Assembly (NCBI GenBank): GCA_965112735.1
Contig: OZ218954.1
Coordinates: forward strand, 1,736,001 to 1,800,000
DNA length: 64,000 nt
Reading direction: 5' to 3'
From: Phaeosaccion multiseriatum
Lineage: Eukaryota; Protista; Ochrophyta, other classes
Under the pieces are notes generated by a model. It ran no database searches. It worked only from the letters and a program-made list of their open reading frames with translations, and had not been told where the DNA came from. Each line of letters opens with the position of its first letter. The stretch's first letter is position 1. The position numbers and the translations under genes are program-made. Shown in pieces: positions 18,829 through 23,463 of the stretch.

Positions 18829-20550
18829 CTACTCTTCCTCCCGCGTCGCCACCCCTTCGCCCTCTTTCCTGCCCTCCTCTGTTCCCGCAGGTGGCCATGT
18901 TCCGATCTGCCGCAGACGCTGCTTGATCGTCTGCGGGCCGAGGAGGGCTCTTCTCATCATCCCCTCATACAGTTCCTCTCTCGTCACTCCATTGCAGCTG
19001 TCGTTCTTGTCGCACTCGTCGAAAATGGCATCCAAAGCGGCTCGAAACTGTGGCTTGAGTGTGAGTCCCAGGCGAAGAGGGTACATCACCTCCACCCCGC
19101 CGGACGACCAGGTGGCGGAGGAGGAGGAGGAGGAGGAGGAGGAGGAGGAGGAGGAGGAGGAGTGTACCCACGAAGACGGAGGCAGGCCTGTCAAGACCGT
19201 GTCCCACTCCAGCAACTTCCTATCCGGGCTGATGAGCAGCCCCGGCACTCCAAGCCTCTGAAGGGTGGTGCCCAGGAAGGCCTGGAGGGTGAAAGTCGAC
19301 TTGGACAGAAAGTCCCCCACATTCCTTTGTAGAAGGTAGTAAGGAAGCAAGAGGTACTTGTCGCCCAGCCACCGTTGCAGCCACTCTGCCAGCTTGTCTC
19401 CCGTGTCTGGACCGGCCCCAGGGTGGTCAAACAGCGCAGCTTCCAGTGTCTTGTCGACAGCGATGAAGTTGTGAAGCATGTGCAGGAGTATGGGCACAGC
19501 AAGTCGCCCCGTGAGGTGGTAGGAAGCGCAGAGCACTGTTGACATGAAGCCGAAACCGACCATCTGCCTGGAATACTGAGCGATTCATGACGAGTGCGGT
19601 GTTGACGACACAAGCGAGGTGGAGGAAGTGGTATGCACTCATGAGATCGAGAGGACTTGAGTAGAGACTGGCTCGAAGAGGCGGGAAGAGAGGCTCTAGT
19701 GCAGGGGCGAAGAGCAAGAACACAACCATACACACAGCCGCCCTTGGGCAAAGATATGCTTGATGAAGCGGCCCCAAGGTGTTCCTTCCCTCCCCCCCTT
19801 CCGAATAGCAGCCAAACTTACCTCTTCAGCATCTTGCAAATACCCAGTCTTCAAATGCTTCATCGTGAATGAAAGAGAGGTCCACACATAGGCCGCCACT
19901 GGGCCCACGAAGCGCAGCAATCGACCGAAGATGAGGCCGCGGAAGACCACTTCTTCAGTGACGGGCATGACCAAGCCCTTCGCCGCGACGAAGGCTGCGA
20001 GTTCAACGTTGCTCACGTCCTCAGCTTCGCCCAACAGCGCACGTAAAGCGTGGAGGCGAAGCCCAGCGACCTCCTTCTTGTCGACGAGGATGCTGACAAG
20101 GAGGAGGTCGCTGAAACTTCCCCCCTTCTGCTGCTGAACATTCGCGTCTCCCGGCTCTGAACATTCCATTCCCGCCTTCTGCTGCTGTTCCTTCTGCTCC
20201 ATACCTTCCCTGTCCTTGCGAAGGGCGAGGGAGCGGGTTGCCGCGCTACAGACGAAGCTGCTACAGAGCAACAGCCCAGCGAGCCCCCCCAGAACTTTTC
20301 CCAAGGGCGCGGGAACACGATTCATCAAGCCCGTGCCTAGTCCCACCGCGCGTAACCTCTCCTCCAGGTGTGCCCGCTGCCCTGGGCGCTTCCTCAGCTC
20401 CTTGAGCGTCGATGAGTCAGACCACTTATAGAACCTATGAAGACAAATGGGCAAAACCATTGTCGTCCACATACAGTCCCATCTTGGGAGCCTGTGGTTC
20501 CTATCCCCGCAGAACGTTTGCAGCAGGATAACGTCCTCCTCTGTCTCCAT
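18829..20550 (-). CDS. CPBP (Abi/Rce1-like, type II CAAX) intramembrane glutamic protease, 2 or more exons
   Basis: Motifs EEVVFRG (EExxxR), FTMKH (FxxxH), HMLHN (HxxxN); donor GTAAGT near 19821 and acceptor ctcag at 19576 join in frame. Ends uncertain. Confidence 0.8.
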
Positions 20551-21141
20551 GTTGTCCCTTCTTTAGGGGCTTTATAATGCTTTACTTTTGCTGGCGCATT
20601 TTTATACCGTCGACCGCCGGCCCGGAAAAGGGAGAAGAAAAAGAAATTTGGAATTTTTTGGCAAAGGCGGGAAGAGCAAAATCGCCGACGAGGCAGGCAA
20701 TCGGAGGGCAGGGGCGGAGGGCAGAGGGGCGGGCGGGGAGAGGGGCAGGTCAGGAAAGAGGAGAAGACAAAGGCATAGATGGCGATGGCGGGAACAAGGA
20801 GGCGAGCAGAGGTTAGGACAGGAAGGCGCGCGAGTGCAAGCAACCGCAACGAAGTTATCTCCGCCCACTCACCTACAACGATTGTTGTACAGTCACAGCC
20901 CGGCAGGGCTGAGCCCGGGAGGGCTGAGCCCTGCAGGGCTGACTGCTTCCCCGGCTTGACGCCCCAGCTGTTGTTGATTCGTTGCCCGCCCGAGCACATG
21001 ATGATGAGTGAGGACAAGTAAGCAAGCCAGGGAAACTCAGGGGCTGTTTCTTGTTCAGGCAGCAAGCAAGCAAGTAGGCAACACCAATGGCTGGACAGGC
21101 AGATGAGCGAGACGCAGGCAGGGGCGCAATCAGCAACTTAC

Positions 21142-21388
21142 TGGGAAGATGTTGTGGGTGGCGTGGCCTTGGAGTTGGCCATGCCTTTGAGAAGTCGTAC
21201 AGCCCGAACAGAGTGATTGTTCGGGCCGCACAAGGGTCGCGCAACAGCGTGGCCTTGCAGGTGGGGCAAGTCCACACCTTCTTGGCCCCCACGCACTCGT
21301 TGAATGCACCACAGGCGGTGCATGTCTTGGTGGTGAAGGCCTCGCTGGGCTCAAGCAGCACTAGTGAGCAGGAGGGAGAGGCGATAAC
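21142..21388 (-). pseudogene. Fanzor/TnpB-family RNA-guided nuclease C-terminal fragment (RuvC-II Glu, Zn ribbon, RuvC-III Asp), exon-like remnant
   Basis: VLLEPSEAFTTKTCTACGAFNECVGAKKVWTCPTCKATLLRDPCAARTI matches the family pattern ExxTSKTCxxCG...CxxC...DRDxNAAxNI; bounded by pyrimidine tract + CAG upstream and GTAAGT downstream; no upstream RuvC-I/WED coding sequence found. Confidence 0.8.
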
Positions 21389-22013
21389 CTGAGCGAGAGG
21401 AGTTCGGGCAGCCAAAGAAGGAAGTCAATGAGAGGAATTGTTAGCTCAGCCACACGAGGGTTGCTGATGGGGACGGAGGTGTCTCAGTCTCAGCGTGGGA
21501 GGATGGACCTGAAATACAAGAAGAGACTCCTAAATAGGAGAGAGGAGGCTTTTGTTGTGAAAGCTGCGCAAGGCCACACTCTCGATTACTTACATAACAC
21601 CATACGTGAGAGGCGCGGATTCCGTCTCTCACCGGTGGGGGGGGGGGGAGGGCAGAGCGACTAATGTGAAAATGAATGCTACAGGCCCTGCCCGGGCCGG
21701 ACATGGACATGCTTACATGTGCATACATAAAAAGCGCCACATAAAAAGCCCCCCCCCCCCCGCCCTTGCCCCTGCCCCCCTGCCTGCCCACTCAGGCCGC
21801 TGATGCCTTACCCCGCTCTTGCTCCACACCCCCCCCCCCCCCCCCCCCCCCCGCTTGCTATACGCTTGCCCTACGCTCCTCCTCCTCTCATCCCCCCTCC
21901 CACCTCTCCTCCACCCCCCCCACCCCCCCCCACACACACAGCCTGCAAATGGACCACCTCGCCTGGACGAGAGCTTCCCGCCCCAACCAATGATAGTCGA
22001 GCTTCCCCTCCCC

Positions 22014-23463
22014 CTATGCGACAGCGTTGTGCAGGCTCTCACAGATGGAGCTGGAGCTACTGTGCTGCATGCTGCTCCCTAACATGCCTGATCCTCCAAA
22101 GCTGCTGAAGGTCCCACTGCCATTGAGACCGCTGCTCTCCCGGGCAAGCTTGGCGTTCTCGCTTCGCATTCCGTAGAGCTTCTCGAGATATTCATCCGTG
22201 ATGTCGCCAGTCACATACCTCCCGCTGGGCGGGCGTCGGAGACGGGTCACACAAAGCCGGAAAAAGGGTGCGAGGCAAACAGGGGGAATCACAGACACAC
22301 ACACACACACGCACGCACATAGAAAGAGGGGGAGGGGGAGGGAGGGAGGGAGAGAGAGAGTAAGCACCTCACCCCATCCCCCGGCGCTGGTCATGGCATC
22401 GTTCGCCCCACTTCCCCGCCCCCCCTCCCAGTCCACCACCCCACGCCGCTACCATCGTTCGCCCCTCCTCCCCTCCCCCCTTCCTGACACCTCGTACCTG
22501 AAGCAAGACGAGTCGAACCTCTGAATGTCGGGGTTGAGACGTGTGATGCAAGCCTCGAGGTCCTCGAGGTCTTGATAGATGACCCAATCCGCACCCATCT
22601 TCTCCGCCACCTGTGAGGTCCGGGCAGGGGCAGAGTGGAGCAAAGGGGGGCAACAGCAAGGCCCCGCAGGCGGGCAAGGGGGCAGTGGCATAAGGAACAA
22701 AACACACGAGCACGAGAAAGAGGAAATAACGAACATCAAAAGGGGTTTGCTGTGTCAGAGAGGAAACACACACAAACGTCGCATCGTGTGTCAGCACCCT
22801 GCAGTGCCCCAAGGCTTCACAGAGGAGGAGGGCTATAAACCTCTGTCACCCCCGTACACACGCGTGATGCGCTAACCTGCTCTTCTGTCCGCTCAAAGGC
22901 GATGAGCTCCTGCCTCGTGGGGATGTCGATGCCGTACACATTGGGATAGCGCACCGGAGGGGCGGCAGACACAAAGTAGACCTACAAATACACCACACAT
23001 AGGAGAAGAAAGGGCAAGAGCAGCACACAAATCAGTTTTGAGAGAAGGAATAAGAGCAGGACAAGTGAGTCAAGTGGTAAGGTAAGTGGGTACAGGACAG
23101 CTCAGCTCGGGGCGGGGAGGCCTTGCCTCCGGCGGCGGCTGCCGACCCAGAGAAGGTTCTCAGGCGCGGTGCGTGGGAGCGTGAGAGGTGCAAACGTCCC
23201 GTGAGGGAGAGCGAAGGAAGGGAGTACACGGGGCGGAAGACACGACCACGCCGCGCGGGGAGGCTTATTGCAGTGGGCGCTTTTGGGATGGAAAAGGAAG
23301 CGAATGGATTGGAAAGTGCTTCGGCGAGCAAGGGAGTACGGGCACGCACGAGGTGCTGACGCACTAACCTTCTTCGCTCCTGCGTCCCTCGCCATTTGCA
23401 CCAGCTCCATGCTCGTCGTGCCACGAACAATAGAGTCGTCGACGAGCAGCACCACCTTGCGGC

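Follow-up and report, generated by a model that had tools for sequence, protein, structure and literature searches.

A 5'-truncated Fanzor-type fragment, most likely a dead relic, in the spacer between the purF and CPBP genes of an algal-type genome

The segment at positions 21388–21142 on the minus strand of the window (the whole 64-kb stretch of DNA that was analysed) raises the question of whether a piece of a Fanzor gene, lying between a purF gene and a CPBP-family gene, is still in use as an exon or is what remains of a gene otherwise lost. Fanzors are RNA-guided, DNA-cutting enzymes of the TnpB family, encoded by eukaryotes and by viruses that infect them. The original prediction had described an 82-codon peptide carrying the end of a TnpB/Fanzor protein, taken to be a 5'-truncated copy packaged as a spliceosomal exon or an exon captured into a host transcript. 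Translation of the window DNA confirms the peptide, VIASPSCSLVLLEPSEAFTTKTCTACGAFNECVGAKKVWTCPTCKATLLRDPCAARTITLFGLYDF... over 82 codons. Our results point to a non-functional, 5'-truncated Fanzor relic that is most likely dead.

The open frame around the fragment, read from stop to stop, extends from about 20873 to 21424 on the minus strand and contains no ATG; the ORF listed within it (180 aa, 21415–20873) starts with TTG, and a stop codon lies 12 codons upstream of the proposed acceptor. Recognisable homology is confined to a core of 59 codons (21358–21182) that is free of stops and frameshifts, and the proposed 82-codon extent of the Fanzor/TnpB end is thus upheld for the core but not for the remainder. 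This is mirrored in codon usage: in-frame GC3 in the core is 0.78 (0.47 and 0.59 out of frame), and host exons show 0.70–0.76. GC3 falls to 0.45–0.6 both before 21394 and after 21184, the latter point being ∼40 nt short of the proposed donor, and neither a homologue nor coding-type GC3 was found in the open frame outside 21358–21182.

The core matches Pfam PF07282, the Cas12f1-like TNB domain (a zinc ribbon, formerly OrfB_Zn_ribbon), over profile positions 23–60 of 60 with 33.7 bits (gathering score 26.3; E 4.2e-8), while the other zinc-ribbon families in Pfam reach E 0.09 or worse, at least six orders of magnitude below PF07282. The top NCBIfam model is IS607_TnpB (E 2.6e-6), matched at positions 350–389 of 431, where the end of the protein is expected, followed by the generic guided_TnpB and IS200_TnpB models. 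Solved structures in the PDB matched by the fragment are UnCas12m4a (1.8e-6), the mimivirus Fanzor2 L79 (4.4e-5) and LaTranC, with ISDra2 TnpB reaching an E of only 0.36; the mimivirus ‘TnpB-like protein L79’ is ApmFanzor2 (PDB 9b0l). A phmmer search of 1.84 billion representatives returned 407 matches at E≤1e-3, the best with 48.7 bits and ∼50% identity and none closer. From 68 full-length matches (350–700 aa) a family profile of 450 positions was derived and run against every stop-to-stop piece of the 64-kb window in six frames; it matches this locus only (E 5.9e-24), with profile positions 383–441 falling on window positions 21358–21182. Taken with PF07282 and GC3, this delimits a C-terminal core (21182–21358, minus strand) made up of the strand before the alternative glutamate, the zinc ribbon and the RuvC-III helix, and bears out the assignment to the RuvC-II (alternative Glu)/zinc-ribbon/RuvC-III end of TnpB/Fanzor. 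An AlphaFold model calculated on alignment A1 (mean pLDDT 79.7; 84–93 in the core) places short strands followed by a helix in the zinc-ribbon region. Foldseek returned nothing at E≤0.001 for this 82-residue model, the domain being too small for significant E-values, and its highest-probability match was ApmFanzor2 (probability 0.94, rmsd 2.3 Å over 46 columns, but E 0.29).

Short zinc ribbons typically give weak cross-matches, and the view that the fragment is an unrelated CxxC...CxxC ribbon or a chance ORF, not derived from TnpB/Fanzor at all, might draw on such matches here (eL43, DnaJ and others at E 0.05–3) and on a scan of bacterial and archaeal genomes in which two of the three loci found are DnaJ zinc fingers. 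However, the PF07282 score, obtained in the very profile search suggested at the outset, exceeds the curated cut-off, and the best matches are not to an unrelated ribbon. Flanks outside the ribbon, E-A-F-T-T-K-T-C and R-D-x-x-A-A-R-x-I, also match and align in register with the RuvC motifs. Together with the wide gap to other ribbon families and the PDB and family-profile matches, this effectively refutes an unrelated origin, which we consider scarcely credible.

Jiang et al. reported that the canonical RuvC-II glutamate is missing from Fanzors and from some TnpBs, which use an alternative one ∼45 residues away (E467 in ApmFNuc), and that the E467A substitution abolishes cleavage (PMC10530073); the alternative position is typical of the Fanzor/pro-Fanzor lineage and not of canonical TnpB1 (PMC10530073). 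In the PDB alignment with chain 9b0l_P, P14-S15-E16 of the fragment pairs with V465-N466-E467 of ApmFanzor2. The GAG codon at 21341–21343 (minus strand) thus encodes, as Glu16, the relocated RuvC-II glutamate that had been predicted just before a TSxxC-type motif (TTKTC here), in a column that is 94% Glu among the 68 relatives. The CxxC...CxxC zinc ribbon (21257–21322, minus strand) is formed by Cys23, Cys26, Cys41 and Cys44, whose columns are invariant in A1 and 97% Cys among the 68 relatives. The RuvC-III aspartate, Asp51 in LLRDPCAARTI, is encoded by the GAC codon at 21236–21238 (minus strand); the R50 and D51 columns are invariant and align with the RD of ADRDENAAKNI in ApmFanzor2. In alignment with relatives the glutamate, four cysteines and aspartate are therefore all intact, as had been claimed, and the columns conserved at 84–97% that the fragment matches are T19, K21, T22, C23, C26, G27, G34, C41, C44, R50, D51, R56 and I58.

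The accompanying claim that other motif residues had been replaced stands only in part. The RuvC-III motif reads LRDPCAARTI here versus DRDxNAARNI, but the first Asp column of DRDxN, Leu here, is variable among relatives, and Cys at the first Asn position, as in LRDPC, also occurs in full-length relatives (P0022, P0034 and P0052) and so lies within family variation. Threonine for the second Asn, in RTI, is unusual (the column is 88% N) and unique among relatives, and phenylalanine for K/R (89%) is a further unusual substitution. Decay read from the DRDxN/NI changes was largely rejected, since the Leu and Cys fall within the variation of intact relatives. A C-terminal sub-profile gives the fragment 75.4 bits, the 17th lowest of 88 scores, the 87 independent matches having a median of 84.5. 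The fragment has diverged without being badly eroded, and its decay is slight.

The third locus of the bacterial and archaeal scan, a true TnpB from Ferrithrix, also carries a Glu before STKTC and, at 47%, is about as similar over the 59 residues, so that similarity over this length cannot separate a Fanzor from a TnpB of the Ealt type. The label ‘Fanzor’ is based on the alternative glutamate and the eukaryotic host, whose flanking purF and CPBP genes are both split by GT–AG introns, and not on a resolved phylogeny.

The 5' truncation that had been proposed is supported within the window. Full-length relatives contain HTH_OrfB_IS605, OrfB_IS605, TNB positions 1–60 and a DPG motif in RuvC-I (found in P0003, P0011, P0015 and the giant-virus locus L005), and the regions corresponding to DPG and to the canonical RuvC-II glutamate are absent from the fragment. 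Of the protein only the last ∼13% remains; the other ∼87%, which includes WED, REC, RuvC-I with the DPG aspartate and the first third of TNB, is gone. Over the 64 kb, no frame yields a match to profile positions 1–382 (E 4.4 for the best piece elsewhere), a tblastn search of the window with 150 relatives found no second site, and reading the three minus-strand frames of 20400–23200, including the interval between the fragment and purF, revealed nothing Fanzor-like. In the other direction, homology past the proposed donor, suggested by long tblastn alignments of two relatives (P0049 and P0062), was rejected, as BLASTP shows similarity in the core only and the tails are low-complexity noise. An exact 32-mer search of metagenome contigs gave no match. 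Because WED, REC and RuvC-I are absent, the published TnpB/Fanzor architecture predicts that the encoded piece can neither bind guide RNA nor cut DNA and, by this analogy, cannot be a nuclease.

The spacer that holds the fragment is ∼1 kb long, and the fragment is oriented like the two genes flanking it, whose identification as purF and CPBP is confirmed by matches to TIGR01134 and PF02517. Upstream on the minus strand, the purF exons match TIGR01134 positions 331–374, 365–397 and 388–428 of 432; the introns are GT–AG with donors GTTAGC and GTACGA, and the stop codon is at 22016–22014. Two TGTAA motifs, the usual poly(A) signal of green algae, follow the purF stop at 21717–21713 and 21594–21590 (minus strand), that is two in 620 nt against 0.25 per kb expected. 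They are likely to be the purF poly(A) signals, and their position upstream of the fragment suggests, on the basis of the green-algal consensus, that the purF mRNA ends before it. The purF 3' region also contains long G-runs and C-runs of up to ∼24 nt (21633–21657 and 21750–21860), which make up many inverted-repeat pairs; the inverted repeats were rejected as transposon ends, being low-complexity sequence. Downstream, the CPBP/Rce1-like protease gene (PF02517, minus strand) has its ATG at 20550–20548 and GT–AG introns, the first being GTAAGT...CAG with its donor at about 19821. A TATA-like box, TATAAAAA, lies 49 nt upstream of the ATG at 20606–20599 (minus strand) and may act as the promoter, so that this box and the start codon (20548–20606, minus strand) likely mark the downstream limit of the spacer. 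The TGTAA pair and the TATAAAAA box may also serve as anchors for annotating purF and CPBP. No repeats of the spacer were found elsewhere in the window, nor any terminal repeats or transposon ends around the fragment.

The borders of the segment bear on whether it is a live spliced exon, part of either a Fanzor-derived gene missing from the annotation or a chimeric transcript of the host, and supplying a zinc-ribbon/RuvC-III module. All of the predicted motifs are present where they had been placed: a putative acceptor (21389–21444, minus strand) consisting of CTAAC at 21444–21440, a 75% pyrimidine tract and CAG at 21391–21389, and a putative donor, GTAAGT, at 21136–21141 (minus strand), 41 nt past the end of homology, the hexamer being the one used as the real donor of intron 1 in the adjacent CPBP gene. 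Frequencies in the window, per kb and strand, are 1.43 for CAG after a tract with 70% or more pyrimidines, 0.19 for GTAAGT and 0.95 for GTRAGT; a pyrimidine tract and CAG with CTAAC occurs only four times on both strands, and the full combination of CTAAC, pyrimidine tract, CAG, an open frame of 100–500 nt and GTRAGT three times on both strands, this locus included. Such borders are jointly uncommon and, with intact key residues and coding-like GC3, would suit an exon. However, the 64 kb contain no detectable partner exon, exons outside the window would require an intron spanning the whole purF gene, which is unlikely, and coding-type GC3 stops ∼40 nt before the donor. Most relatives, moreover, end 5–25 residues past the NIxL(R/K) motif, which leaves no need for another exon. 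Exon packaging is plausible from the acceptor- and donor-like motifs, but no upstream exon was found and coding-type GC3 does not reach the donor. Capture into a host transcript finds no support in these results: the TGTAA signals suggest that purF ends upstream of the segment and the TATA-like box that CPBP starts downstream, the one transcript likely finishing before the segment and the other beginning after it. Queries with the 180-aa ORF and the 82-aa segment also found no near-identical protein of 45–315 aa in protein collections, although these blanks say little, as the genome's own proteins seem to be absent (the CPBP ORF has no match at E≤1e-10 in the same collection). We know of no activity for a RuvC-III/zinc-ribbon piece without RuvC-I. 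On balance we consider a live exon unlikely. Very unlikely is the specific case of an expressed, spliced exon whose Fanzor zinc-ribbon/RuvC-III module is kept by selection, whether it has joined a new transcript of the host or is the last exon still recognisable in a Fanzor so divergent that its upstream exons go undetected. Splicing of the segment into an mRNA would make it a case of Fanzor module exaptation.

The sequence beyond the core invites another reading, in which the relic is larger and comprises the coding tail, the right end of the element and a guide-RNA (omega/fRNA) scaffold at about 21180–20870, the non-coding part perhaps still being expressed or put to a new use, such as in the promoter region of CPBP. 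The guide RNA of TnpB and Fanzor is known to overlap the 3' end of the ORF and to extend to the right end (PMC10711439), and the 331 nt at 21200–20870 (minus strand) fold better than shuffled sequences (z −3.2). However, this fold is driven by three tandem near-palindromic 15-nt units (AGCCCGGCAGGGCTG-like) at 20897–20942, which form a strong hairpin upstream of CPBP, and Rfam searches, conducted locally at relaxed E and over the whole window at the gathering score, gave no meaningful match, nothing lying at or near the gathering score. The window offers no further copy of the spacer by which the ends of an element could be defined, and from a single copy a guide-RNA scaffold cannot be recognised. 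We know of no role for a guide RNA that lacks its nuclease. We therefore regard this extended relic as quite improbable. A sub-threshold Rfam match to mir-6132 (20877–20960, plus strand; 26.9 bits versus a gathering score of 112) overlaps the hairpin units.

A dead, 5'-truncated relic remains our preferred explanation. That the fragment is not a gene is argued by the missing ATG, the upstream stop, the want of a similar predicted protein, the low sub-profile score and the N to T and K/R to F substitutions, and truncated relics of transposon genes are common. Its source would have been a long-resident and probably intron-bearing Fanzor gene of this genome, because the GC3 is host-like and the borders are exon-like; deletion or rearrangement would then have removed most of that gene, leaving what may now be neutral DNA. 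Such an origin is plausible, with splicing putative: the joint rarity of the borders fits derivation from an intron-bearing gene, and intron gain has been reported for long-resident Fanzors (PMC10530073). The fragment alone matters little, as no nuclease action would be possible. Its wider meaning may be that a GC-rich, intron-rich genome of algal type hosted Fanzor genes for long enough to acquire host codon bias and possibly introns, and the fragment is a possible marker with which to date or trace the Fanzors of this genome.

Comparison with known systems places the fragment nearest to Fanzor2 and the IS607-type TnpBs. Yoon et al. concluded that all Fanzors derive from IS607 TnpBs bearing the motifs DPG and Ealt (PMC10711439). 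Among solved structures ApmFanzor2 ranks second by E-value for the fragment, after UnCas12m4a, Glu16 corresponds to E467, the CxxC...CxxC and RD motifs are in register and IS607_TnpB is the best NCBIfam model. Unlike Fanzor2, the fragment comprises only ∼59 of 450–630 residues, without RuvC-I/DPG, WED, REC or a start codon, and has neither a nearby TnpA nor recognisable element ends. It also lies in a nuclear genome and may have intron-like borders; introns are absent from canonical Fanzor2 genes. The algal-type host with GT–AG introns, the host-like codon bias and the exon-like borders are instead reminiscent of green-algal Fanzor1. Intron-containing Fanzor1 genes have been described in green algae, such as Fanzor1c (CrFNuc) of Chlamydomonas reinhardtii, which resides in Helitron2 elements (PMC10530073). 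This likeness is one of host, codon bias and borders; neither a Helitron nor any other transposon feature was found around the fragment, and the solved Fanzor1 structure is not among the PDB matches of the relatives at E≤0.01. Prokaryotic TnpB (IS200/IS605 OrfB, e.g. ISDra2 TnpB) has the TNB zinc ribbon and the RuvC-III motif in common with the fragment, but the match to ISDra2 is much weaker, the fragment's glutamate is at the alternative position and its host locus is eukaryotic.

The closest full-length relatives are uninterrupted ORFs of 475–630 aa, and the top solved match of full-length relatives is ApmFanzor2 (E 1.6e-22 and 1e-18). One of them, P0011, is encoded beside a deoxynucleoside kinase on a dense, intronless, giant-virus-like contig, and three giant-virus loci from IMG/VR match the fragment at 42–46% identity. 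In two of these, from giant-virus MAGs (L004:4257-6156 and L005:4260-6156), a 207-aa ORF precedes a Fanzor2-like TnpB; the ORF in L005 matches PF00239 and is a serine resolvase, and that in L004 is nearly identical. Resolvase and TnpB form the IS607/Fanzor2 arrangement, and giant-virus relatives of the fragment thus adjoin a serine resolvase as in IS607. The long TnpB frame in both MAGs overlaps the entire resolvase ORF, so that the true TnpB start is probably further downstream. A giant-virus-like, intronless contig represented by L001:3240-5123 (Logan SRR12088349) and L002 carries a 525-aa Fanzor-like gene, and 46 nt after it on the same strand is an 86-aa ORF with a weak Pfam match to dCMP/cytidine deaminase.
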